Assembly: GCF_902459465.1 (NCBI RefSeq)
Contig: NC_047074.1
Coordinates: 9,982,001 to 10,046,000 of the forward strand
Length of the DNA: 64,000 nt
From: Asterias rubens
Taxonomy: Eukaryota
Direction: 5' to 3'
Part shown: piece after piece, positions 1 to 17,412 of the stretch
How positions within the stretch are numbered: the first letter of the stretch is position 1
Layout of the letters: the number at the start of each line of letters is the position of its first letter
Made by a program: the position numbers and the translations under genes
The notes under the pieces: model-generated
The model's input: the letters and a program-made list of their open reading frames with translations, nothing else
What the model was told of the DNA's origin: nothing
Databases searched by the model: none

Positions 1-1123
1 TAAATTTGTTTAATAAATATTACTTTTTCTACCTGATTATAACTTATATTTATAAGAAGCTAAAATTCTGTCTAGTTTGTACACACCAAAATGACCATGG
101 TCCATGGATTTTTGAATTAAAATGAAATAAATATATTAATATTATTTTAAAATTAAGGTAGGTACGTGACAATCCGGGGATCCCGTGCGTAGCTCCGTGC
201 ACCCCCGAACTGATCGTTCATTGACCGGCCGCGTAGTAAATCGCGTCATCAGTTTGAGGGTAGTAGTCGTATTTTAAGAGCATACTTACTGCACATGTGT
301 TGATGACGTAGTACACATGTTCCTGTCTATCAGCGTCTTCGAATTTTTTCGATCCGAGTTGTAAAAGTGGAAAAAAAAATCCGTGAAAGTTTTGGGTCGT
401 CAAAGTCATCGATTCGTTATCCGAAGGTAAGCTTTGTTTGTTTTAAAACCTATACTCATTGTTTGTTCATATGTTCGTCTATACTTACTGTGAATTTGAA
501 GTGATTCTGATAACCCCCACTTTAATTTTTACCGGCCGCAAAATGTTGTGTCGGTGGCGAAATTTTTTAAAATGGCCGGATTTCATACTGCCGGATGCTT
601 GTTGTAAAATACTGTCACTTCCTTTTAAACTACTTTTAGGCTCTAAAATCATTCTTAAATGAGACTTAGGGATGTTTCCCATTGACTTTACGAAAAAAAA
701 GTGTAAATTATGCCTCACAGACACCGATGATTATGGATTTGTAAGGGTGGTTTTTCAGTAGAGAAAAATGACATAAGCGATCCTGACGTCACGTGACCAA
801 ATCTCGGCAATGTGATTGGTCAGTGCCAATGTTTACAAACACAGGCTGCCTTTTTTTTCGACGGTGTATTGCTTAACCTTCATGTTGTGTGGTTTTAAGG
901 TCATTTCGCGTTTTTTTTTTAGATTGTTTTTAATTTTAATTAGTGTTTTAATAAACAGGTTATGAAATAATTGATTTAATTAAAGAAAAATTCCACTTCC
1001 TCGCCGCAAAAAATATAAAGTATTGACTCTTGTGTAAATGCCAGTCCTTATAAATTTATATAATTTATCATTTTTACATTCTGCTTTTTATTTTGTTTAT
1101 AGGGTTTGTGATAGGCGACAATA

Positions 1124-4100
1124 ATGCCACCAAAGAAAAGGAAACTGGCATTGCCAGCAAAGGTTGGCAAGATACGCCAATACTTGACAGATAATTTTAG
1201 CATCTTCCCTGAAGAACTGAAGAATTTCAAGAATGGCCATGTACTTCTTCAGTACATCATAAATGACAGCTCTAGGACAATGACTATAAAGGCAGTGATG
1301 AAAAAACTTCCATCATGTGTCATTAATCTCAGCCAGCTTCAATCTCTTCTGACCCAAGCAAAGAAGTTCAAGAATTTAAGGCGTGATTCTGAAATGGAGA
1401 AATACGCATCCCTTTGCAACCAATTGTTCAATCCTGTCAATGAAGATCCTGAGCCAGAGACCTCCAAGCTAGAACATTTTGACAGTAAGTGTCTTTCTAA
1501 CTTGTTTTGCGAACGACGTGAAATAATAAAATCATTGAGAATCTTAAATGTTTTATACATAGGCCTACCATGGAAATTAACAAAACAAAATTAAATTGTG
1601 ACAATGCACACACAAGTGATTTTTTATTATTTGTTCTCTTTGTCCTACTGAGTTTTCCTTTGTGGTGATTATCTGTATATTATAATAATATTGACATCAC
1701 ATGTTTTCTGACTTGCACTGTGGTGAGTTTATTTTTGAATCTTTTCAATTGTCAAGCCCAAACTTAAATCTTCAAACTTTCAACCCAAATGTCATTTTAT
1801 TATACATTGTAGTAACAAAGGTTTGTAAATTATTCAAATTTCAGGTCCAAAGGAGGTTCAGCCTCAGCCTGGAACATCACAACAGCTTGACCCCCAGCCT
1901 GGAATATCACAACAGCTTGATCCCCAGCCTGGAACATCACAACAGCTTGACCCCCAGCCTGGAACATCACAACAGCTTGACCCCCAGCCTGGAACATCAC
2001 AACAGCTTGACCCCCAGCCTGGAACATCACAACAGCTTGACCCCCAGCCTGGAACTTCAGCACAGCTTGAGCCCCGCCCCCAGCCTGGAACTTCAGAACA
2101 GTCTATTGATCCCCAGCTGCCAAAGACACCAAGATCATCTTCGTCTAATCGCTCCTCTCCACGTCAAGGGCTTCTTACTCCCAGGAAATTGAAGCTGAAA
2201 AAAAGATTGGAGTATCTTTCCCAGACAAGGAGTACCATGAAGCTTAAGTACAAAAATAAGATTGCAAAATTGCGACATGAAATCAACTACCAAAGTCTGC
2301 ATAAAGTAAAATATCTAAACCAGGTAATAACCCGCAAAGACCTTTCACTAAAAAAGAAGGACAACAAAATAAAACGCCTCAGAGTACAGTTTTCAAAGAC
2401 GGTGTTGGCAAAGGAGCTGGCTGAAACAAAGAAAAAACTAAAAAATTCAAGGCGAAACAACAAACGACTACAAAATGTGAACAAGAAGAGATGCTCCTCT
2501 GAAGCTACTGATGATGTCGAATTCCAGAAACTGCAGGATGAAGTCAATGTGAAAACTTCAACTATAATAGCCTTGGAGAATGAAAACCTTTGTTTACAAG
2601 AGACAGTCGAGTCATTGCAGCTTGGGGAAAGTAAATTACAGAAGGAAGGCAAAGTGTATTCCCCAGAAATGAGGATGTTGGTGTATGATGCAGTAGTTAA
2701 TCATGTTCCAACAAAAAACGTACCAACTCTGATTCAACAGTTTGCGAGACGGTCTGGAGTTATTCTTGACAAAGTTCCACACCGAAACACTGTAGAGATG
2801 ATGACCAGGGAGTTGGGAGTCATTTCTGATTTTCAAGCTGCTGAAATTCTTCTTCAAAATCAAAATATCACTCTTGGTTTTGATGCAACGACTCAAGAAG
2901 GTGTCCACGTCAATAGTGTTCATATCACTACCCAGACAACCTGCCACATACTTGATATTGACCAATTGGCTGGTGGTACATCAGAGGATTACGCACTACA
3001 CATCGAAGCAAGTATTCAACGCATCAACGATGTTTACTGCCAGTTCTACTCAACCAACTTCTCAGAAAATCGGAAAAAAATACTAAATAACATATCAAAT
3101 ACTATGTCTGACAGAGCTGTAGTTAACCATGCTACAATACAACGACTTGAACTGTCCTGGAGAAAATCCCTTAACGAGCTCAACTGTCACCTCCATCCCT
3201 TAGATACCATCGCCAGTAAGACAAGATCAACGCTAAAAATTATGGAGCCTGCTGATGTTGGTAAAAAGTTATGGGGGACTGAATCCTTGAGTCACCAACT
3301 TGTTCTCGCAGTCAACAAACTACGTTATAAAGACGGTCGCGGGGACCCAAAAGGTTTTAAAACCTACTTGGATAATGCTGGACTTCCAAGAGGACTCATT
3401 CCAAGATACAGGGGTAACCGCCTCCACATAATGTTTCACATCTGTGGCAAACTTCATTCACATTGTGATTTTTTTCTGAAGATGTTTGAAGAAGGAACTG
3501 TTACTTGCGGTGGTCTTCTGGGGGGGATAAGGCAAGATTTCTTGAATCCTTGTTCCCAAGTTGAAATTCAAATTCTGGGGCTGATCGGAAAATTACTCTC
3601 AGGACCATGGATGGCCACGTTTTACACATCCAGTGAGTCTCCAATCAGTCACATCGATGGCATCACCATTGTCAAGGAAGTTGTTGCTCTTATGAAGAAG
3701 TTTTCCCTCACCCCACTTGACACGCTGTCCACTACAACAGATTTCTTCGGCAATGAACTCAAGTCTACTGATGAAACTCTCGGCAAACTCCAACAGAAGC
3801 CAGCAGATGATCCATTATTTGAGACAATGATGGGGGCCTGTCTCTCTGCAAGTGTTAGTGTACTAGAAAAACAATATGAGCGGTACTTCGGCACCGACTT
3901 GACCGACAAATTAAGAACAGAAACTGAGTCTGCAAGATGCCACAACATAGATGCCGAGGAAATAATGGGGATGTTTAGTGCCTCTAAAGAACGTGCCCCC
4001 AATGCAACGATGTGTTATTTGTCGTCAAGGATCCGGGCGCAGAAGAATAAGGTGGTTGATTTTCTCGACAATCTGGAAGAAGAAAAGAGAGCAAAGCTGA

Positions 4101-4570
4101 TTGAGGTGGCAATAACATTAGGAAGAAAGCACAGACAAGAGAGACGGAAGAAAAGTAGAGAAATCCAAGTAGAGATTCGTAAACGGCTGGCTAATAAACT
4201 CCAGAAACAGAAAACAAAAGACAGGCAGAAGCTGGATCGATTACTCAGATCCTGTGACACAGGGTCACTGGATTTAAGCAAACAAAATGAATTTGGGGAT
4301 TTGGGAGAAGACAGACTTCAAACCGTTAAGGACATCATTGCTGGGAAGATTGTGGGTCACAAACTTTCACACATTTGGTATGATGAAGACACTCAGGAGA
4401 AAACCGTGTACTTCGGGAAGGTAGAAAAATTGTTGAAGAGAAATGGGGGAACTTACCGGATCGGGTACTGGAAAGAGGATCAGCTGTATGACGATGATGC
4501 AGAAGACTTTGACCTTTCGAAATACACACTGGCAGTTGACTTCATCTGTGAAGACTTGATACTTTCATAA
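1124..4570 (+). CDS. DDE transposase, 2 coding exons (1124-1484, 1845-4570), ~1028 aa
   Basis: ATG 1124 (MPPKKRK, NLS-like). Donor GACA|gtaagt at 1485 and acceptor tttcag|GT at 1845 join in phase 1, giving an open frame through the 30-bp repeat into ORF 2189-4570. Motifs GFDATT (D, 2882), MSDRA (D, 3110), NCHLH (C(2)H) and HNIDAEE (E, 3956) follow the D..D..C(2)H..E order of hAT/P/MULE/Kolobok-type transposases. Confidence 0.85.
1862..2100 (+). repeat. 30-bp coding minisatellite (PQPGTSQQLD decapeptide, ~7-8 units) in the transposase
   Basis: Tandem CCCCAGCCTGGAACATCACAACAGCTTGAC units, in frame with transposase exon 2. Confidence 0.95.
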
Positions 4571-5689
4571 AGATACATGTACATGTTACTCAATTGTAAG
4601 TGGGTAAAATGTTGTTCAAAACAAAATCCTCAAGTCGCATGACTTTGTATTTTTTGTTTTTGTTCGTTAAGAAAATTATCCCTTTTTTTAATGTCAGTAA
4701 CTAAAATTAAGGAACCCATCTTTTATAGTAAGTAAAAAGAGTTGCAAAGTGTTCTGTGTTAGTAAGGCTTTCTTTACTGAAAGTTTTATTAAAATCTGTG
4801 GGATATTACAAAAGTTATGACAATTTTTGGTTCAGAACTCTCCGAAAAGTCCCAAAAAGGTCACACGTTTTCTTTGTTTTCTATTATAAAACAATACAAA
4901 ATTAAGCCCGTCAATTAAATCTTAAAATATTCATAACTTTTTTAATAATTGACCCATGACCAAACAATTTATATCATTGTAATGCTTACTGTGAGCTCTT
5001 TCCAATGGTATTAAAACTAAGCCAAAATGTTGAATTTGAATTTTTTTGTCACATACCTAATTAAGGAGTTAAAACTTTTTTATTAAAAAAGAAATATATT
5101 TAGTATAGGGTAGGGCCTATTTTATTAATTATTATAATAAATAACATAATTATATTATTTTCCCCGAAAATAAATAACTGATTCGTGGCGCATAAAAAAA
5201 GAGGTTTTTAATCAACAAACATACTGTCCTGGGAAAAGTTTCCGTATCACGCCACCACTTGTTCATTCAATATGATAGTCCAGTATCTATATTGGAAAAG
5301 TTTCTGTCTGGCACCACCCCTTTTTCATTTGATGTGAACTAATAAATAGTATCTAATTTACCTCACGGAGATATTCCTTTTTGTAAAAATGAGTGAAAAA
5401 GTGGTGGCGCCATATGGAAAGTTATCCATTTAATTTATCTCAATGATGAGATATCCCTTTTTGTAAAAAGTGGTGGCAGGATACGGAAAGTTATCCATAC
5501 TTTTAAAATAGGAGTCAAACATTTTGAGCCTTCGTAATGCTAATTTTTAAAATGATTATTGACAGGAGAGTACGTCAATGCCCATGTCGATGTGCATTAC
5601 TATTGCTAGTCTGTCCTGTCGTTGACCAAGATGTCTTTTTTACCATGACGACATGTTTTATATATTGTCTCATAATTTGACAATTTCAG

Positions 5690-8600
5690 GTTATTATCCG
5701 GTGCCTGCCCCCTACCCTGTCTGAAGCAGACTTCCTGGAACAGGTTTCACCCCTTGCAGATAACAACTACTTGTACTATGTCAAAGCAGACAGAAGGTGA
5801 GTTGCATTAAGGGCCAGTGGTTAGACTGCCGCCGTCGATTTCACCAAACTCTCCCTAACCTTCGGATTAATCTTAGGACTGATGTAGTAGGATGAGTTAA
5901 GTTCCGTATCCATAGACATTAGGACGCATTGAACCCATCCTAAATTAGGATGGGTTTATACTCGTCCTAACTCGAGATAGGACTTCTCCGAGCATTTCGT
6001 GAAATCGGCTGCTGGACTTGTAATTACATGGTTGTGGGTTTGAATCTTTCAAAATACATAGTAGCCGCAGCACAATGGCTAGAATAAGTTGATACTTGAT
6101 ACTTGATGAAGCTGGTGAAAGCTAAACTGGGATGATGTGCTGTGCATGACGCCGTGACCAGTGGTGCACACTTGCGGGCCCATTACCCGGATCTCCGGAA
6201 GGGCTGCAAGCCTAAATGCTTGGATGGAGGGTGCACTGACGACAGTAGAAGATAATCTATTCCAGATCCTGATGGTGCGACGATAGAATGAATATTTGTA
6301 GCAGTCCAGGGAGAAAGAGGGTACGCCATATTTGTTTAGGTGATGATCATGTCTCAACTGTTTGGGTCTAGTGACTGAATCACAATGTCTTGATTTGTGC
6401 AATTCACAATAAGAGGTGATAAACCACTGTTTCTTTTGAGAGAGATTGGCTGTTGCCAGCTTGGCATTTATATCCCGTTGTGTGAGTTTGCTTCTAAAAA
6501 ATGCAGTTTTTTGTTTGTCTTGTAGCCTTGGACCCAATGCGTTTTCAAGAGCCTACATCAACTTCATCAATCCAGAGGAGATACTCTCATTCCGAGACCG
6601 ATGGGACGGCTACCTCTTTACTGATACAAGAGGTAATCACTGACCAATTCTAATGTTAAAGCACTGTACACGTTTGCCAATTACTCAAACTATATACTAG
6701 TATAAAACTTGGTAACGAGCAATAGAGAGCTGTTGAAAGTACATGTATAAAACATTGTGAGAAACAGCTCCCTCTGAAGTAATGTAGTTTTCATAAAAGA
6801 AGTAATTTTCCACTAAAATATTTGAATTTGATTTCGAGACCTCAGAATTAGATTTTGAGGTTCCAAAATCAAGCAACTGAAAGTGCAAAACTTTGACCGT
6901 GTGACAAGGGTGGTTTTTCTGCCATTAATTTATATTATCTCGCAACTTCGATGACCAATTGAGTTCAAATTTTCACATGTTTGTTAGTTTCTGCATATAA
7001 TGTTGAGATACACCAAGTGAGAGTACTGGTCTTGTACAATTACCAAAGGTGTCCATCGTCTTTAAGCTAGCCAGCAAATGTTTGTATTTTTACATAAATA
7101 TCCAGGACTCAATATCCAGGAAATAAAATTTCAGGAAATCTCCGGGGTTTGGGGTTTGAATTTTGTGTTTTTCCACTGCTCCCTGTATTCATTCCGCCTG
7201 TGATCTATCTTCCTGCAATTTTTTAATCTTCTTTCCCATAAAAGCAAACTGACAATGAAAAGTTGCCTTCTTATAGAGTTCCACAGCCAGTGCCGCGATG
7301 CCCTGTGCTGTTGCTGTGGTGCCCTGTGCAAGGTTCCAATACAAATTTAAATTTTCCTCATAGAGGTCTACCCCACAGAGGGAAATTGCCCTGCCGTCGA
7401 TTTCACAAAACTCTTCCTAACTTAAGATTAATCTTAGGACTTAGGACGGGTCCCAACCCTGCACTGTAGCATGCGGACCTTAAGAATAATCTTAAGTTAG
7501 GACGAGTTACTCATCCTAACTCGAGATAAGACGAGTCCTAACTCTTTGTGAAATCGACGACTGCCACTTTAAGAGCAAAGTTCAAGGCTTGTGTTTGATA
7601 ACAAATCCGGAACTATTCCTTCTGTAGGTACAGAATATCCAGCCGTTGTGGAGTTCTCTCCGTACCAGAAAGTCCCCAAGAAACTAGGAAGGAAAGCCGA
7701 CCCTCGCTGTGGAACAGTTGAGACTGGTAAGTTGGGACAAGTTAAAAAGTTGGAGCTATTAAAGGAACACATTGCCTTGGATCGGACGAGTTGGTCTATA
7801 AAAAGCGTTTAAAACCGTTTGTTATGAAATATATATGGTTAGAAAGATGTTGTATAAGTAGAATATAATGATCCACACAAGTATCACTCAAAATTGAACG
7901 GTTTTCTTTTTACGTCGCAAACTATCACGGTCGGCCATTTGACTCCTATAAATGGCCGATCGTGTTATTGGACGAAGCAAAAAGAAAACCACGCAATTTC
8001 GAGGCATATTTTGTGTAGATCATTGTATTCTACTTTTACATCATCTTTCTATATGCATTTTATAACAAACGGTCACAAAACGCATTTCAAAGACCAACTC
8101 GACCGATCCAAGGCAACATGTTCCTTTAATGGTCATAGATTGGTTTTTGCAACAGAATGATGGTTGTTTTTTCTACAAGGTATATAGAGCTACGTTTTGA
8201 AGTATGAGACCTGTTTTTTTTATAGCACCATGTAATGGTTTACAAGGTGCTGTGGCGCAATATACTGCCAATCAGACCAGGAACACGTAGACGAATCCCC
8301 TCTTTTTACGATAAGTGCACTGGGTTCTTTTAAATGTGCATCAGATAACACATGGTAAATAATTAAGTCCCATCCTAATGACACAGCAATAATGGTTTAA
8401 AAGTGTTTTTCTTAAAGGCAGTGGACACTATTGGTAATTACTCAAAATAATTATTAGCATAAAACCTTACTTGGTAATGAGTAATGGGGAGAGGTTGATA
8501 GTATAAAACATTGTGAGAAACGGCTCCCTCTGAAGTAATTTAGTTTTTCGAGAAAGAAGTAATTTTCCACAAATTTGATTTCAAGACCTCAGATTTAGAA

Positions 8601-11600
8601 TTTGAGGTCTCAAAATCAAGCATCTGAAAGCACACAGCTTCGTGTGACAAGGGTGTTTTTTCTTTCATTATTATCTCGCAACTTTGACGACCGATTAAGC
8701 TCAAATTTGCACAGGTTTTTTATTTCATGTATATGTTGAGATACACCAACTGTGAAGGCTAGTCTTTGACAATTACCAATTGTGTCCAGTGTCTTTAAAG
8801 ACACAAGTGTCATGACCCGAATTAAAACCCACATTCTTCTGATCAGCACCACCAGAGCTTAAGTCCGATGTTCTTATCCACTTGGCCAGGACACACCACT
8901 AACGAAGGAGGACTTATACCTTGGTTGTTTCTTATTTCAATAGATGAGGACTTCTTGGCCTTTGTGGAAGCCTTCCAGGCTGAAGTAGAACGTCTTCCCA
9001 GTGCAGAGACCTATCTGGAGGAGCTAGAGGCAAAACTAAGTGAAAAGGAAGGTAAACAAACAGAATGGAGTGGTCTTTATTTTTTTTGTGTAATGTTCTT
9101 TTTTTATTTCCTCATTACATTCAAATATTGCTACTCGTACACTTTGAGCTGATGAGAAACACTTTTTGCATTCATTTCTATTTGTGTCATTAGAAACTTC
9201 CGTATTTAGCGCTCTATAAAATGTTGTAATTATTATTATTATTTATATGTTGGCAAAAAGACTCTACTTTTATGCATTTTGGTGTAAAGGACGTATATTT
9301 GTGTGTGCAGTTCTTGAAAACATTTGTTTCTTATGGAAATTGAAGGCCATTTTGTCACAGTTTCACTGGTTTCCAACTTGATATTTGTCTATATTCTGTT
9401 TATATTTACATATTCATGTGTAGTCTTTTTCTTTTTGTTTTATATTATATTTTGCATTTTATCGTGTACTTTGATTGTGTATGTTTGTTGTTGATGTACC
9501 ATACATAATGTTTTATTTTTGGTGTAAACAATGTATGAGTTGCTGTGTTTTCATCTTAAGCCTCAAACATGTCAGAGATACCAGACCTACATGGTAGAAA
9601 CCTCGTAACCACGGTATTCCGTGACATCACATGTTTACCAACAAAGAACCACAGAGCCTGGACTTCCTGATTTGTTGACAGCTCAAAGGAAGAAAATGAA
9701 ATCTGATTTTTTTGTTGAGATTGCACCAACTTTTCATAGAAAGGTGGCACATCTTTTAAGCTTAACATGTTGTGCTGACACACACTGCTATTTTTATAAT
9801 TCTTGAATTTATCCCAAAATCATGATACAAAATGTAAAAATTGTCCATTCGAGTCTGTGTAGTATCTCGCTTGAAAGGTCCATATTATTCTGAAACCAAA
9901 CAGCACTTCTAGTTTTTGTCTTTTTTTCCAAACCCCTGTTTCCCAGAAAAGCTGTGTCCAATAAATAAAGAATATACTAGCCATGTCTGTTTGGTATTGG
10001 CATACTGTATGATGATGATTGTACAGAAATGAATTGTCACTACAGTCAGTTACAGTTAATGTTTGTTTAGAATTGACTAATCCGCTTGTTAAAAAGTGTA
10101 TTTCCAATATTCTATTGTTTTTTACTGCACAGTCAGGTGCTGAAGATCTGGCTTAGGGTGGCCTGGTAATCTCTCCCCTATTGTTGATCCTTTTCTTCTA
10201 TGTGTTTTATGTAACTTATTCTATTTTATTCGCCTTTTCTACTTTCTATTCCCCCTTGTTCTGTTTTTATCCCGTTTCAACCTTTCATGTATTTTTATTT
10301 TCTATGTTTTTTTTTATGCAACTGATTTTATAGATAATTGTAGGTAGTTTTAATATTGATGTCTAATCACCATTTGCTTTTTGCCTTAAATTTGCCAATT
10401 ACAATTAAATTTTTATCTTGAGTTTCTACTTATTATAGGCTTATACATTATGTATATTAAAGGTAGGCCTACTCTATAAATCCATTTTTTATTACTATTA
10501 CTATAATTAATATATTGCCACATGTTTACTTTGCCAAATGTTTGAATGATTGATGCATTGACTCTCGATTGTTCCTCTTTTTTACAGCTAGAGCAATTAC
10601 GCCCTTGCTCACCTTCATCAAAAACAAAAAGTTGGAAAGAATTGTAAGTAACTGAAACTCCTCAACTCTCGTAATAAATTCTTATATAATTTTACATAAC
10701 CACAATACTTTGAAGTGCAAAGTTTTTTAAAATGCTTTATACGATCGAAAGCTGCTGTAAGCTTCTGAAACCAAAAGTTTTGAATCCAAACCTTTCCTTT
10801 AAATGTCCAAACTGTGCAGAAGGTCCGCCAGGAGGCCAAAGATGAGCGACGACGGAAGGAGAGAGAGCAGAAGAAGAGAGATGACGAGAGACGTCAAAAG
10901 AGGGACGACGAAAGAAGACGTCAACGTGAGAGGCAGAGACAGAAAGAAAAAGAGTCAAAGGAATCTGACAAATCAGAACCACAAAAGATTAAGGTATTGT
11001 TTGGTCCTTCCATGGCAAAGCAGCCAAGCTCAACAATATTGTTTTATTTATTTGAGATCGCTTCTCGGTAAACTGAGGGTGTTTGTTTTTTAAATTTCAA
11101 AGTTTCAAAGGCATGGTATGTATTAAAGGCACTGGACACTATTGGTAATTATCAAAGGCCAGTCTTCTCACTTGCTGTATCTCAACTTGCATAAAATAAC
11201 AAACCTGTGAAAATTTGAGCTCAAGTGGTCATCGTAGTTGGGAGATAATGAAAGAAAAAACACCTTTGTAACACGGAGCTGTGTGCTTTCAGATGCTTGA
11301 TTTCGAGACCTCTAATGCTTGATTTCTCGAAAACCGTGCACTTTAGAGGGAGCCGTTTCTCACAATGTTTTATACTATTATCAACCTCTCCCCAATACTC
11401 GTTACCAAGTAAGGTTTTATGCTAATAATTATTTTAATTAATTACCAATAGTGTCCACTGCCTTTAAGCCTTGGTGACTAGTGTGATTAATGTTGAAGTC
11501 GTGACTATTAATTGCTTAGTCGAGTTGCGGCTACTGCTTTTTCAACTAGTTGGTTATTTGTGCCACCACAACTTCCACAAAAAATAGTTGCGACTACCTG

Positions 11601-14600
11601 CTTGTTGAACCAATTGTGTTGTTGAGGGCTATTCCTGACAACATAATTAACTTACGAAACACAATCAGACATCAGTGACACAATCCTTCAATCCTTTGAG
11701 CTTGAATGTTACTATATTACGCTAGCGACACACAATGTCTTAAGAATCTTGAGAATGAAAAATTTGTCACGAATGGTGTGTATTTGCAACTATTTGAGGT
11801 ACGACTAGTCAAGATGCAATGCATCTTGAGAATTAGAAATTAGTTGCGACTAGTGTGCTAGTCACAACTATTTGAGGCGCGACTAGTCAAGATCAATGCA
11901 TCTTGAGAATTAGAAATTAGTTGCGACTAGTGTGCTAGTCACAACTATTTGAGGCGCGACTAGTCGAATAGTAAATTTCAGTAATAGCCCAGGCCTAGTT
12001 GCTCCCATTTTTAACTTTCAAACACTCCATAATGACAGTGGATGATGATTTTCTCCTGAAATGATGATCAAACTAAACAATTTCTTTGTTTTTTGTTTTC
12101 TCCTAATGTAGCTGCTGAAGAAACCAGAGGGAGACAAGTCTAACAGAAGGAGAGATGAACCCACAGCTAGTTCCAAGATGGATGACAGGGGGAAGGAGAG
12201 AGACCGAAGGGGAAGAGTTGATGCTGTCCAGAATAAAGGGCGGTCCGATGATAGGTAAAGAGCTAAAGCGTTAAAGACAGTGTACACTATTGGTAATTGT
12301 CCAAGACTAGTCTTCTCACTTGGTGTATCTCAACATATGCATAAAATAACAAACCTGTGAAAATTTGAGCTCAATTGATCATCGAAATTGCGAGATAACG
12401 GTGAAAGAAAAAAGCACCCTTGTCACACGAAAATGTGTGCTTTCAGATGCAAGTCGATTTCGAGACCTCATCTATTTTCTGAGGTCTTGAAATCAAATTC
12501 GTGGAAAACTACTTCTTTCTCAAAAACTACGTAACTTTAGAGGGAGCCGTTTCTCACAATGTTTTTTACTATCAACCTCTCTCCATTACTCGTTACCAAG
12601 TAAGGTTTAGTGCTAATAAATATTATGAGTAATTACCAATAGTGTCCACTGCCTTTAAGATATAACAAATAGATCTTCTCCAATGTGATATGTAAATTGC
12701 ACATAGCGCTTGAGCTCTAACATTTTGGTTGGCAAAATGAGGAAACGCCGCACTGTTTTGTAAATAGCTAATGGCTGCGTGACGCGATCGTGCATCTGCT
12801 GAATGCACATCTCTACTCCGTAAGCCAACCAATAGGGTCTGTATTCATGAGTGAATGTATTGGCAATATTTCTTCAGAAAGGTCTATTGTTGGGAAGGGT
12901 TGCAATTGAAAAACTCATTTCAACTTGACCTTTTTTCAACTACAGTTTTACCTTTTTTTCACACTTTTCAACAAAGAGGATATTTTTAGATGGAAATAAA
13001 AGAGTATTGACTATTGACTTACTTGGCTGTTAATAACCTTGCGATAAAGGACGTCGTCTTTAGTTCGTTTCTGCATCCCAAGGACATGAACCTGCTACTT
13101 TTAAAAGGCCTGTAAGACCTTGTTGCCAATTTATTACTCCCTAATAAACTAGCAATTAAAGACCGTGTCGTACTGAGCTGACAAAATTAATGTTCCTTTG
13201 ATTTTTTGTCTGCATTCTCAGAAAAGAAAGAGACTTCAAGTCAACATCCAAAGATTCCCGCACAGGGTCTCAGAGGGATGCTGAGGAGAGAGATAAGTCC
13301 AGACAGAAAGATCGGGACTGGGAACACGAACGGCGAGACAGAGATCAACACAGAGACAAAGAACGGGAGAGGAACAAAGATAGAGATAGACAGCGCGATA
13401 GAGACAGAGACAGACATGCTGACAGAGGGGCTGACAAACACCGTGACAAAAGGCACGATCAGGAGACCAAAGTAGCCCCTGAGAGACGCAATAAAGGTAG
13501 GTGGCCCTCAACTAATAAGAGGCTGATGAGACCAAAAGAAAGTGTTTTTGAGAAGATACCAATTAAGGACCTCCACAGCTGCCAATTTTGATTGCCACAC
13601 TCGAAACTAACCCTGATTTAAGTGTGTGTGAAAAAAAAAAAACCTTAAAAGTAACCAACTAAAACCAGACAAACGATAAAATGTTTGCACCTAGATCTAG
13701 AGTCTACACAATAGCTTACTAGCCCAGGGGTCGATTTCACAAAGAGTTAGGACCTAGGAGATATACAAAACGTGTGGCTGGTCCTAAGTTTGGACGAGTA
13801 ACTTGTCCTAACTCGAGATAAGACTAGTCTTAACTCTTTGTGAAATCCACCCCTGGGCTTAAATCTCTGGCATGTGGTCAAGTGATTATTTCGTTCTCTG
13901 CTACATGCATTCATCAGAAGTGTTTGTTTAACTTGACCTAGATTCCGACTCAAGGGGACAATCCCAGCGAGAGGATCGACGTGACGGCGGCCGCCGAGAC
14001 TCGTACAAAGAGAAGCCTCCGAGGCAATCTCAGGGGAAGGAAGGCGAACGTGACAGGAGAGATGTCGAGTCATCTCGCAGGAACAGCACCAGCGACAAAA
14101 GACCCGACAGGAGCGAGGGCCAGTCGAGGACAACCGGGCAGGGCAGTAGAGAGGGGCCTAGTAAGAAGGAAGAGAGGGACATGGGGGCTAGGGCCGACAG
14201 GAAACCAAGAAGTGACTCTCATGAGGAGCACTCGGAGAGGTCGGCAAAATCTGGCCGTGGGAGGGACAGGTCTGACCGTGAGCGTGACCGTGTCCGCAAT
14301 AAGGTAAAACTTCCCTTTAGGAATGTATGAAAATACAGGCACATTATTTTGTTGTAAGTTTAAACCAATGTCTTGTAAATATTGTATTTTTGTTTTTTTC
14401 ATTTAAGACTCTTAGCTTTTATTACAATACTGATTGTATACTAATTTAGGGTTTTACCCTTAAATCGATGTGTGTTAGCACTGTATACTCAGTACTTTCC
14501 TGAGTAGAGCTCTGTGAACAAAATCACAGGTGTATTAATGTAGGATTCAAACTGCCGCCAGCTATCGAGCAATCTCGGTGGTCTACTTGGTAAGACATCT

Positions 14601-15564
14601 GCTCTAGAATTGCAAAGGTCGTGGGTTCGAATCCCACCTGAGTGATATGCCTGTGATTTTTCACTGAACTCGGGATAGTACTGTGTATATAGTGCTAACA
14701 CACATCGGTGTATTATGGGTAAACCAAAGTTAATATTCTTGTAATATTCATGATGAAAATTTGACATCTATTTGTTGATCTTGATATCTGTTTACTTGAT
14801 AGGACCGACCAGCCATGGCCCTCTATCAACCAGGCAACAGGGGAGTAGGTTCTAAGGAGCAAGACGACAAGGAGGTCGGAAGCAAGTCAAAAGATGAAAG
14901 GTCAAGCCCTGTCGACTCCCTGCCTGAGAAGCCAAAGTCAGGGGAGGACAGACGAGAAGGGCGAAGAGATAGTAAAGACTCCAGTCAGGGGAAAGGTGGC
15001 TCAACTCCAAGACCTTCCCAAGGAGGAAAAGATGATCAACGCAGCAATGATAGAAATAGAAAAGACGGGCGTGGGCCTAAGGATGGCGACCACAAAGGCT
15101 CGAGGCAACATGGAGGGAGGGACGACCGGCCAAGAGAGGGCGACAGACGGGGAGACAGAGGGGGTGATAAACCCAGGAGTAGTGGAAGCAATGATTCGTC
15201 GCGCAGCGGAACCAGCGAGAGACAACGAGGGGGTCAAACTCCCCGAGACAGACCCGGCGATAGACCCAAGGGAAGTGATGGACGAGGAACTACACCGAGG
15301 GATGTTAATAGGCGATCCTATGATAGGCCTAGAGACAGGGGAGGTGATAGACCGAGGGGTGGTACTAACGATAGACCGCGTGACAGGGGTGCTACCAAAG
15401 GGCCTACTAGGCAGCCGGAGAGGGATCAGGGTAGGGGTAAGCCCGGGGTACACTCTGGAGGAGATAAGACTGGGAGTGATAAGGGGAAAGAGAAAGGCAG
15501 CGACAGACCGGGAGATAAAGGAAGTAGTGATGGGAAGAGTGGGGCAGCAGACAGCTCAAAGTAG
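5690..15564 (+). CDS. UPF3: Regulator of nonsense transcripts 3 (UPF3), 5'-partial. Exons 5690-5796, 6526-6632, 7628-7726, 8944-9051, 10588-10643, 10820-10993, 12112-12254, 13222-13496, 13942-14303, 14803-15564
   Basis: The spliced translation gives VIIRCLPPTLSE...FSRAYINF...FRDRWDGYLF...EYPAVVEFSPYQKVP (UPF3 RRM-like domain), TPLLTFIKNK, a charged coiled coil, KLLKKPEG and RNKDRPAMALYQPG (EJC-binding motif). All junctions are GT-AG with consistent phases. The start exon lies upstream of the window. Confidence 0.95.
5828..6012. mobile_element. Palindromic MITE-like repeat, GTCGATTTCAC...GTGAAATCG family (also ~7392-7562, 13727-13857, ~26405-26540)
   Basis: Inverted termini and a shared TTAGGA/TCCTAA-rich core recur in four places. 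Confidence 0.7.
6075..6450 (-). mobile_element. 3' fragment of a non-LTR retrotransposon (CR1/L2-like ORF2 end)
   Basis: Minus-strand YKYSFYRRTIRIWNRL resembles the LINE ORF2 C-terminal SFF.RT...WN.L motif. It is followed by a short (TCAAGTA)n tail. Confidence 0.65.
7763..8125. mobile_element. Kolobok-like MITE family 2 (second copy 21704-22076)
   Basis: TTAA|AGGAACACATTGCCTTGGATCGG...CCGATCCAAGGCAACATGTTCCT|TTAA. TTAA TSD with RR termini. Confidence 0.75.
8416..8794. mobile_element. Kolobok-like MITE family 1 (~350-380 bp), the most abundant repeat in the window
   Basis: TTAA|AGGCAGTGGACAC...GTGTCCA(C/G)TG(C/T)CT|TTAA with a shared body. Other full or partial copies at ~6659-7063, 11127-11463, 12275-12654, ~15640-15995, 16205-16303, 16308-16656, ~18790-19185, 20319-20679, 23347-23721, ~28955-29325, ~30880-31150, ~31470-31775, and fragments at ~43330-43575, ~55110-55352, ~59415-59660. 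Confidence 0.85.
8800..8900 (-). mobile_element. tRNA-derived SINE 5' fragment
   Basis: The reverse complement GGCCAAGTGGATAAGAACATCGGAC...GTGGGTTTTAATTCGGGTCATGACACTTGTGTC has degenerate A and B boxes and a deuterostome-SINE-like head. Confidence 0.55.
9555..10400 (+). mobile_element. Possible decayed L1/Tx1-like LINE 3' end
   Basis: A stop-riddled + frame contains CKNCPFES and ends ...VLKIW, then a T-rich tract, as in Tx1/L1 ORF2 C-termini. Very degenerate. Confidence 0.3.
11789..11965. repeat. ~76-bp tandem duplication (about 2.3 units) in a UPF3 intron
   Basis: ACTATTTGAGG(T/C)(A/G)CGACTAGTCAAGAT...GTGCTAGTCACA is repeated. Confidence 0.85.
14444..14740 (+). mobile_element. tRNA-core SINE-like element with an inverted copy of its own tail at the 5' side
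   Basis: tRNA-like core (~14573-14645: CTCGGTGGTCTACTTGGTAAGAC...GTGGGTTCGAATCCCAC) bracketed by the tail GTGCTAACACACATCGGTGTA and its reverse complement. Confidence 0.75.
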
Positions 15565-17412
15565 ATTGATATGTAGTATAGAGAGGTTTAAGTTTCAAGT
15601 CTTTTAAGTATTATTTGGTTTATGGAACCGTTCGATTGTTTTAAAGACGCTGAACATTTTTGAAAATTGTCAAAGACCAGTCTTCTCACTTGGTGTATCT
15701 GAGCATATACCAAAAACAGCAACCTGTGAAAATTTGAACTCAATTGGTCGTTGAAGTTGCGAGATAATAATTTCTAACTAAAGTATTGAATTGATTTCCG
15801 CTGAAGTGTAGAAATCAAGCATCTGAAAGCACACAGCTTGTGCGACAAGGGTTTTTTTTTTTCTTTCATTATTCTCTCGCAATTTCGACGACCAAATGAT
15901 TTAAAATGTTCACAGGTTTGTTATTTTATGCATATGTTGAGATACACTTAGTGAGAAGACTGGTCCTTGAGAATTACCAAAGGTGTCCAGTGCCTTTCAG
16001 ATGGCTCAGATTTTGAATTTATTTATACCAATATTTGATTGGTAACCCTCCTACCCTTGATAATAAATTTAATGAACCATTTGAAACCATTCATTTGCAA
16101 GAGTTGCGTATGGTTGCAGTCCGTGACACAACTGTGCACTGTACTAAACTGTGCACATTTATTATGTGCTCTGTGGAGATGCAACCACCTCATGACATCT
16201 TTAAGGGCAGTGGACACTACTGGTAATTACTCAAAATAATTAAAATAATTATTAGAGAGAAGACTGGTCTTTGACAATTACCAATAGTGTCCTGCCAGTG
16301 TCTTTAAAGGCAGTGGACACTATTGGTAATCACTCAAAATAATTATTAACATAAAACCTTTCTTGGTGATTAGTAATGGGGAGAGGTTGATGGTATAAAA
16401 CATGGTGAGAAATGGCTCCCTCTGAAGTGCCATAGTTTTCGAGAGAGAAGTAATTTTCCACAAATTTGATTTTGAAATCAACTATCTAAACGCACACAAC
16501 TTCGTGTGCCAACGGTATTTTTGTTTTCATTATTATCTCGGAAGTTTGATGACCGATTGAGCTAAAATTTTCACAGGTTTGTTATTTTATGCATATGTTG
16601 AGATACAACAAGTGAAAAGACTGGTCTTTGACAATTACCAATAGTGTCCACTGCCTTTAACTTGTTACTTTGTACATTTTAGTTGAATACTGCTGCTAGA
16701 TTGCATTGACTAGTAATTTTAAAAAGACAGATTGACTTCACAATATTTTATCAACTCATTTCCCATCCAACTTGTTAAACTCTCTGACAGTCAAAGTTTA
16801 TTCATTTGGGAAAGTTTGAAAGAAACGTTTTTTAAAAAATAAAGGTTAAAACCCCCCAAATGTTCACTCAGTGTGCGAGTTCTTGCAGCTTGTTTGTAAA
16901 TTTTTGTTGAATAGATTTGTTCTTATTTTAAGATGTCTTTGTTTTTTAATTGTAAGACGATTTTTCTTTGTTTTACCTTAACATTTTGCATTTTTTTCCT
17001 GTTTAAAAAATCTAGAAGCAAATACAGTGGTAAAAGTACATGGTTTGTCAACCAAAAATGGCAACAGAAGCAATTATGCAACAAATTAACTGCCATGTAG
17101 CAATTCTTTTGTTTTTGTTTTTACTTTATATAATCAGTGATTTCATTGGATAAGTGTTTTGATTGGTGTGAGGTCACCTTTGGCAGCTGCACTTCCCGGT
17201 CGTCTGCATATCAATGTAGGTGAAAGGTGAAGATGGACGGGGATTGACCATGGATTGACCTAATAGAGGCCACTCTCTGACGTAATTCACGAACCTCGAA
17301 GTGTGACGTCAATGAGCGGCGCTTTTGTTTGTGTATAAGACAGCCGTATATAGACAGCGCAGTGTAGAATGAATCGGAGGGACTGGGCCAGTCTACCAAG
17401 CTGGATAAATCT

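Follow-up and report, generated by a model that had tools for sequence, protein, structure and literature searches.

A hAT-like DNA transposon of Asterias with a candidate Spindlin-type Tudor domain at the C terminus of its transposase

The transposon at the 5′ part of UPF3

The window, meaning the whole 64,000-nucleotide stretch of Asterias rubens DNA that was analyzed, contains a complete DNA transposon and, on the same strand, exons of UPF3, a nonsense-mediated decay factor, in the 5′ part of which the transposon sits (Table 1). The element is bounded by 14-bp terminal inverted repeats (TAGGTAYGTGACAA), which were found by reading its ends, and is flanked by a perfect 7-bp target-site duplication; an inverted-repeat finder run on positions 1 to 6000 did not list repeats as short as these. 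The transposon ends 625 bp upstream of the first exon of the UPF3 domain, the UPF3 start-codon exon lying outside the window, and this position agrees with the sequence-only reading, which had placed the copy in the 5′ part of a housekeeping gene. Between the transposon and the UPF3 exon, at 5232 to 5496, nested short inverted repeats with 38-nt arms of 80 to 84% complementarity resemble small MITE-type elements, and the contig of one run changes flank at 5230. Inside a UPF3 intron, the minus strand carries a 152-aa open reading frame (ORF; 6079 to 6537) whose C-terminal tail looks to us like the terminus of a LINE reverse-transcriptase protein from an invertebrate. UPF3 sequence was followed over positions 5684 to 15600 of the plus strand, with long Arg/Asp/Glu-rich open stretches from about 13200 to 15600 that end in a DRPAMALYQPG motif.

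The transposase gene within the element is intact and consists of two exons encoding 1,028 amino acids (1,029 codons including the stop). Exon 1 encodes an N-terminal region that is conserved in the family and has no known domain, and the ORF that makes up the larger part of exon 2 ends with the peptide flagged in the sequence-only reading. Moreover, a second GT..AG joint (424>1101) upstream of the start codon, seen in one run, skips 676 nt and suggests that the transposase transcript has a 5′-UTR intron. The product is 99% identical to annotated "uncharacterized" proteins of Asterias amurensis and A. rubens, and more than 170 homologues were found in cnidarians, priapulids, molluscs, echinoderms, a sea spider, and fishes. 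The copy number of the coding tandem repeat in exon 2 may explain both the range of Asterias element lengths (4.9 to 5.15 kb) and the existence of 1028-aa and 1088-aa products.

Comparison of copies indicated recent mobility. At the DNA level, the window element shares 99.8% identity with an A. rubens copy at another locus and about 98% with three A. amurensis copies, also at other loci; these three are 99.5 to 99.7% identical among themselves. Either shared descent of the congeners or recent transfer could account for the values of 99.8% and about 98%. All four of these copies have ends identical to those of the window element, the ends of family copies reading TAGGTAYGTGAC, and each lies at a different locus within its own 7-bp duplication (CATAATT, GCCAAGA, CATTATG, and one imperfect, at locus L001). 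Contigs of other runs switch to different flanks exactly at positions 159 and 5059. Terminal inverted repeats, a target duplication, an intact ORF, near-identical copies elsewhere, and transcripts were all found, as in an active autonomous element. We conclude that the transposon family is young and probably still active.

The same type of border, a TAGGTAYGT end with a 7-bp duplication, was seen in relatives from Patella vulgata, Hydra vulgaris, and Anneissia, a crinoid. Besides the window copy, those at L002 to L006, L009, and L010 have perfect 7-bp duplications, and since the length is kept in limpet, Hydra, and crinoid, the atypical 7-bp stagger is a stable trait of this hAT-like clade. 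A search for inverted repeats and target duplications at L007 and L008 found neither, such that these are probably older copies. The Hydra element at L006 is, at 7.4 kb, far longer than the others and may hold extra sequence.

Table 1. Features of the transposon, its host gene, and sampled family copies. Catalytic residues and the C..H motif are numbered within the 2189-4570 ORF; pocket candidates are numbered within the C-terminal domain.
Feature	Sequence	Position	Strand	Remark
Left copy of 7-bp target-site duplication, ATTAAGG	window	152-158	.	identical 7-mer at 5060-5066
hAT-like DNA transposon, complete, 4901 bp	window	159-5059	+	bounded by inverted repeats and target duplication
Left terminal inverted repeat, TAGGTACGTGACAA, 14 bp	window	159-172	+	inspection of ends
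Transposase exon 1	window	1124-1484	+	ORF; matches N terminus of annotated 1028-aa proteins; spliced joint 1484>1845
Intron, GTAAGT...TTTCAG	window	1485-1844	+	360 nt missing at a GT..AG joint in contigs from two public runs; splice-site sequence checked
Transposase exon 2, stop codon included	window	1845-4570	+	open frame
Coding tandem repeat, seven 30-bp copies	window	1865-2075	+	PQPGTSQQLD units, in exon 2
ORF, 793 codons	window	2189-4570	+	larger part of exon 2
hAT-like catalytic core, RNase H fold and all-helical insertion domain	window	2651-4138	+	AF2 model, Foldseek, VIA
Candidate catalytic D232	window	2882-2884	+	codon checked
Candidate catalytic D308	window	3110-3112	+	codon checked
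C333/H336 motif	window	3185-3196	+	
Candidate catalytic E590	window	3956-3958	+	codon checked
Charged, mostly helical linker, 59 aa	window	4139-4315	+	18 K/R and 11 D/E; between core and Tudor domain
C-terminal Spindlin-type Tudor domain, 84 aa	window	4316-4567	+	residues 945-1028 of the protein, N-terminal cap helix included
Pocket candidate H19 (Spindlin-1 His139)	window	4370-4372	+	86/87 conserved; HMM alignment
Pocket candidate W21 (Phe141)	window	4376-4378	+	86/87 conserved; HMM alignment
Pocket candidate Y32 (Trp151)	window	4409-4411	+	86/87 aromatic; HMM alignment
Pocket candidate Y51 (Tyr170)	window	4466-4468	+	87/87 conserved; HMM alignment
Pocket candidate Y58 (alternative for Tyr177)	window	4487-4489	+	68/87 aromatic; from strand register
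Pocket candidate F65 (likely Tyr177)	window	4508-4510	+	82/87 aromatic; from strand register
Pocket candidate D75 (putative Asp184)	window	4538-4540	+	87/87 conserved
Pocket candidate D80	window	4553-4555	+	
Right terminal inverted repeat, TAGGTATGTGACAA	window	5046-5059	-	inspection of ends
UPF3 exon, start of Smg4_UPF3 domain	window	5684-5791	+	Pfam PF03467, E 7.5e-8, profile positions 4-43
Later UPF3 exons	window	6530-6640, about 7624-7740	+	Pfam-confirmed
Copy in ribosomal L30-like gene, A. amurensis	L001	383 bp downstream of ATG	same as host	
Copy in UCH protease gene, A. amurensis	L002	788 bp downstream of ATG	opposite to host	
Copy in RRM protein gene, A. amurensis	L003	532 bp downstream of ATG	opposite to host	
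Copy in ribosomal protein S13 gene, A. rubens	L004	568 bp downstream of ATG	same as host	
Copy in CSN8/eIF3k-type gene, Patella vulgata	L005	9064-13422; 516 bp downstream of ATG	same as host	TAGGTAYGT ends, perfect 7-bp duplication
Copy in gene for unnamed 192-aa protein, Hydra vulgaris	L006	7000-14448; 96 bp downstream of ATG	opposite to host	TAGGTAYGT ends, perfect 7-bp duplication
Family element	L009	8695-14522		TAGGTAYGT ends, perfect 7-bp duplication
Family element	L010	7737-14111		TAGGTAYGT ends, perfect 7-bp duplication

The transposase core and its C-terminal domain

To the Pfam collection, the transposase is invisible: searches with 39 full-length family members matched no transposase, BED, or hAT dimerization (PF05699) family, and a full-length profile run against PDB sequences returned coiled-coil noise from the N-terminal region and no transposase. 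An AlphaFold model of the core (ORF residues 155 to 650, built from 39 sequences) reached a pLDDT of 90.8 and matched Hermes in Foldseek with an E value of 7.7e-7. In VIA, the model superposed on Hermes with a Z of 19.1 and an rmsd of 3.5 Å over 342 residues, up to residue 609 and covering the C-terminal region of Hermes, and the next best class was that of integrase cores at a Z of 10.9 or below. The candidate catalytic residues D232 on strand 1, D308 after strand 4, and E590 on the helix past the insertion domain are invariant in 39 sequences, and E590 and the charged helical linker behind it correspond to the catalytic Glu and helical region noticed earlier. The enzyme thus shares with Hermes its catalytic core and insertion domain, the DDE triad, the C..H motif, and inverted repeats that begin with TAGG. 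Unlike Hermes, it has no Pfam hAT dimerization or BED domain, makes a 7-bp duplication rather than the 8-bp duplication expected of hAT elements, and adds an N-terminal coiled coil and C-terminal linker and Tudor regions. We conclude that the transposase is, on the evidence of the predicted structure, hAT-like but atypical, both in its 7-bp duplication and in having no recognizable BED or hAT dimerization domain.

Of the 120 listed homologues, 86, from Cnidaria to fish, conserve the C-terminal stretch and carry it at their end. A resemblance of the last ~75 residues to the Spin/Ssty repeat had been noticed by eye, and a profile of 87 homologues upheld it for a slightly larger domain of 84 residues: when the profile was compared with 177,635 PDB sequences, the top 17 entries were all Spindlins (Spindlin-1, -2B, -3, and -4), aligned to repeats 1 and 2 in matches that were marginal (best E value, 0.002) but specific. 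Searches with individual sequences gave little. Single-sequence phmmer against the PDB found nothing, Pfam on the ORF and on its last 79 residues returned noise only (z-alpha, E 0.36; DUF1481, E 0.1), and the Pfam Spin-Ssty family (PF02513) left the window protein unmatched and touched one of the 87 family members at an E value of 0.11. Weak Pfam matches of individual members were to the BAHCC1, PTM/DIR17, Agenet, Tudor_5, SMN, LBR, and Spin-Ssty Tudor families. We conclude that the similarity to Spin/Ssty, as judged at the sequence level, is real but remote.

Structure prediction pointed to the same family. The AlphaFold model of the domain (pLDDT, 97; pTM, 0.84) begins with a cap helix and has five strands, at residues 16 to 23, 28 to 40, 46 to 52, 63 to 68, and 81 to 83, the last two of them separated by a helix. 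Foldseek returned mostly Spindlins at the top of its list, with a probability of about 1.0, a TM score of up to 0.64, and, for the Spindlin matches, an rmsd of 2.0 Å over 72 to 73 columns. VIA superposed the domain on residues 123/128 to 193 of Spindlin-1, which form Tudor 2 with its H3K4me3 pocket, at an rmsd of 1.8 to 3.0 Å over 66 to 71 residues. The first 24 VIA entries were all Spindlins, with a Z of 8.3 to 8.7 for the Spindlin-1 match and 7.1 for the next family, other Tudors and unrelated barrels coming behind them at 7.1 or lower, and a scan of 48,161 chains that was independent of Foldseek had only Tudor/SH3-like barrels on top, among them the H3K4me1-binding RDM15 Tudor at 7.1 and Spindlin-4 at 7.0; Z values of 7 to 9 are only modestly above chance level for small barrels. 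The model has the five-strand barrel of the Tudor "royal family," with Spindlins, RDM15, BAHCC1, SETDB1, and SMN as top matches. The fold prediction that the sequence-only reading had named as a test gave a confident barrel, best matched by Spindlin-1, -2B, -3, and -4 and specifically by Tudor 2 of Spindlin-1. We conclude that the modeled domain is confirmed as a Tudor/SH3-like barrel and that its specific kinship with Spindlins has support from two signals, the sequence profile and the structure match, each independent of the other but modest.

SH3-like barrels can also bind nucleic acids, as in the C-terminal domain of retroviral integrase and the N-terminal barrel of TnsB, and the transposase domain might by analogy bind transposon ends or target DNA. 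TnsB (Z, 6.8), TraI (Z, 7.1), and CarD/UvrD-type barrels were among the structural matches, but identity to these alternatives was 4 to 13%, versus about 20% for Spindlins, and matches at the sequence level went only to Spindlins and Tudor families. Moreover, family members as a whole are strongly acidic in this domain (median charge, -4; pI, 4.9), the window copy having a charge of -7. Such acidity speaks against DNA binding and fits the binding of a basic histone tail. We rejected a DNA-binding SH3-like barrel on account of this acidity and consider a nucleic-acid-binding role highly improbable.

Tudor-like domain 2 of Spindlin-1 is a reader of H3K4me3 and H4K20me3. The transposase domain shares with it a five-strand barrel in which a short helix precedes the last strand (Z, 8.7; about 20% identity), the pattern IVG..I.H.W ... 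G.V ... Y.I.Y, and counterparts of His139, Phe141, Trp151, and Tyr170, as well as, probably, of Tyr177 and Asp184. It differs from Spindlin-1 in being fused to a transposase, in falling below the Pfam Spin-Ssty threshold, and in carrying an insertion of about 10 residues between strands 3 and 4 and a longer helix. It also consists of one Spin/Ssty repeat, versus three in tandem that make up a single globule in Spindlin proteins, and the transposase is therefore not a Spindlin protein.

The second domain of Spindlin-1 binds trimethyl-lysine in a pocket formed by His139, Phe141, Trp151, Tyr170, Tyr177, Tyr179, and Asp184 (PMC8213585). Of these, Phe141, Trp151, Tyr170, and Tyr177 are the four aromatics of the cage, with Asp184 as its acidic residue. 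The positions of H19, W21, Y32, and Y51 in the transposase domain are 99 to 100% conserved from Hydra to fish, and three positions of a putative aromatic cage (W21, the aromatic at 32, and Y51) could be mapped directly. The roughly 10 extra residues that the family carries past Y51 mean that the alignment does not fix the fourth cage residue, which could be Y58 or F/Y65. Position 65 is aromatic in 94% and the Y58 position in 78% of 87 sequences, and the aromatic at position 65, on strand 4, is the likely counterpart of Tyr177, with Y58 as the alternative. D75, which is invariant, and a D/E at position 80 lie within an LAAD.I..DL motif, which presumably resembles the Spindlin-1 segment around Asp184, consistent with the residue numbers of the published pocket.

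A Tudor-type barrel need not read histones. The domain could bind a non-histone ligand, such as a host protein that may or may not be methylated, or it could serve oligomerization or regulation, in which case the 5′ clustering of copies described below would have another cause. Fold matches do not reveal the ligand, and structures of Spindlins bound to SPINDOC or HBx peptides are among the entries matched, SPINDOC being a ligand of Spindlin Tudor 3. The structure match obtained here, however, is to Tudor 2 and not to Tudor 3, and it is the methyl-lysine pocket whose positions are conserved. Oligomerization is required of hAT transposases, and this family has no recognizable hAT dimerization domain, but the core already superposes on Hermes through the Hermes C-terminal region. 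We regard a non-histone ligand or a role in oligomerization or regulation as unlikely.

Insertion sites relative to host genes

Insertion sites were compared for 12 loci, and 6 of the 12 fetched copies, including all four Asterias copies, lie 96 to 788 bp downstream of the host start codon, in a small sample that was fetched entirely through annotated family members and may favor copies near active promoters. Host ranges were counted from the ATG. When the length of the transposon was removed, the six genic copies fell within the first 2.6 to 8.1% of the host span, an outcome with a probability of about 3e-7 by our own arithmetic if placement within genes were uniform. For the other six copies (Priapulus, Patella caerulea, a second Hydra copy, Anneissia, Liolophura, and Biomphalaria), no annotated gene was close by, the nearest gene start being 3.6 kb away, in Anneissia. 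Insertion at random relative to promoters, which the sequence-only reading had named as a refuting result, was not what the sample showed.

Hosts of the genic copies are of the housekeeping type, namely, genes for ribosomal proteins, a UCH protease, an RRM protein, and a CSN8/eIF3k-type protein. Copies lie in both orientations relative to the host and their duplicated 7-mers have no sequence consensus, and the bias is thus positional rather than sequence driven. The stretch that it affects is one in which H3K4me3 would be expected.

One way in which such a bias could arise is through the ordinary preference of hAT elements for open, nucleosome-poor promoters, through selection, or through biased annotation, with little contribution from the Tudor domain. 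Both hAT elements and P elements that have no reader also favor 5′ ends or open chromatin, with Hermes, Ac/Ds, Tol2, and P elements as examples of a preference for 5′ regions. Consistent with that explanation, the target duplications are without consensus, half of the sampled loci have no annotated gene nearby, and every sampled copy was found through an annotated gene model. All six genic copies, however, lie past the ATG at the very beginning of the host, in the zone of the H3K4me3 peak rather than in the nucleosome-free promoter, and copies far from genes were annotated too, such that a host promoter was not required for a copy to enter the sample. We consider it rather improbable, somewhat more so than a non-histone role for the domain, that ordinary preference, selection, or annotation accounts for the clustering. 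The combination of a Spindlin-type fold with a location of most sampled young copies just inside the starts of housekeeping genes makes reader-guided insertion plausible.

A candidate targeting mechanism and its relation to known systems

We favor, with moderate confidence, an interpretation in which this hAT-like cut-and-paste transposon, intact and recently active, has a Tudor domain that binds a methylated histone tail and thereby tethers insertion to the 5′ ends of genes. Three parts make up the transposase, a DDE core like that of Hermes, a charged and flexible linker, and one Tudor barrel of the Spindlin type, and the acidic Tudor domain would hold a methylated, basic histone tail in an aromatic pocket. 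As for the mark, we would guess at H3K4me3 or one related to it, on nucleosomes near promoters. Binding by the Tudor domain would, by way of the flexible linker, tether the complex of transposon and transposase near the 5′ ends of genes that are active in the germ line, and integration with a 7-bp staggered cut would then take place a few hundred base pairs inside the gene, typically in the first intron. An insertion there would be tolerated, and the open chromatin would keep expression of the element itself possible. The analysis itself established the fold, the remote kinship in sequence to Spindlin, the conserved pocket positions, the hAT-like core, recent activity and splicing, and the clustering of sampled copies at 5′ ends; ligand binding, the mark that is read, and a causal part of the Tudor domain in that clustering are what we infer.

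Histone readers are known to steer DDE recombinases to active chromatin: the PHD finger of RAG2 binds H3K4me3, and the PWWP domain of LEDGF/p75 tethers HIV integrase. The sea star transposase would act by the same principle, but in those systems the reader is of a different fold and resides on a separate subunit or host factor. Closer in architecture are the chromodomain integrases of chromoviruses (Ty3/gypsy, e.g., MAGGY), which, as cited in one survey, direct integration to H3K9me chromatin and share the logic of a royal-family methyl-lysine reader that acts as a tether at the C terminus of a DDE recombinase (10.1101/2021.11.30.470311). They differ in that a retrotransposon with a chromodomain is sent to heterochromatin, whereas the sea star element is a DNA transposon with a Tudor domain and copies at the 5′ ends of active genes. 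The same survey recorded Chromo and PHD fusions to transposable-element recombinases, including a hAT-Chromo fusion in one sponge (10.1101/2021.11.30.470311). Those fusions likewise join a hAT-kind DNA transposase to a histone reader, but they occur in one or a few species and are detected by Pfam, whereas the Tudor fusion is invisible to Pfam and conserved in at least five phyla. Finally, Gypsy-10_Ec32 of Ectocarpus is an LTR retrotransposon with a C-terminal Tudor domain that its authors described as, to their knowledge, the first transposable element with such a domain (PMC12477816). It shares with the present family the carriage of a Tudor domain by a transposable element and differs in being a brown algal LTR retrotransposon, with a Spindlin type not stated, rather than a metazoan DNA transposon.

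A literature search found no paper describing a Spindlin-type Tudor domain in a DNA transposase. New here are an intact and transcribed element, the structural assignment of its core, the conservation of its ends and 7-bp duplication across phyla, and a first sample of insertion sites. We offer more tentatively, as a proposal that could well be wrong, that this is the first DNA transposase from nature to carry its own Tudor-type reader of histone methylation, one that recognizes H3K4me3 or a neighboring mark on the +1 to +3 nucleosomes, steers insertion into the first introns of germ line-active housekeeping genes, and represents a strategy that animals from cnidarians to vertebrates have kept for hundreds of millions of years.

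Reader-steered integration is established for retrotransposons, through chromodomains, and for retroviruses, through host factors, and it is barely documented for eukaryotic cut-and-paste transposons. An element that is intact, transcribed, recently mobile, and equipped with a candidate reader offers a direct experimental handle on targeting, and a modular targeting domain in a natural transposase is of interest for vector design. As both the domain and the entire transposase escape Pfam, Pfam-based surveys such as that of Grau-Bové et al. would have overlooked the family, which is metazoan-wide. Reader-guided insertion would show how a DNA transposon picks "safe," transcriptionally open sites and, if true, would raise the question of whether the Spin/Ssty repeats of animals and the transposon module share an origin.
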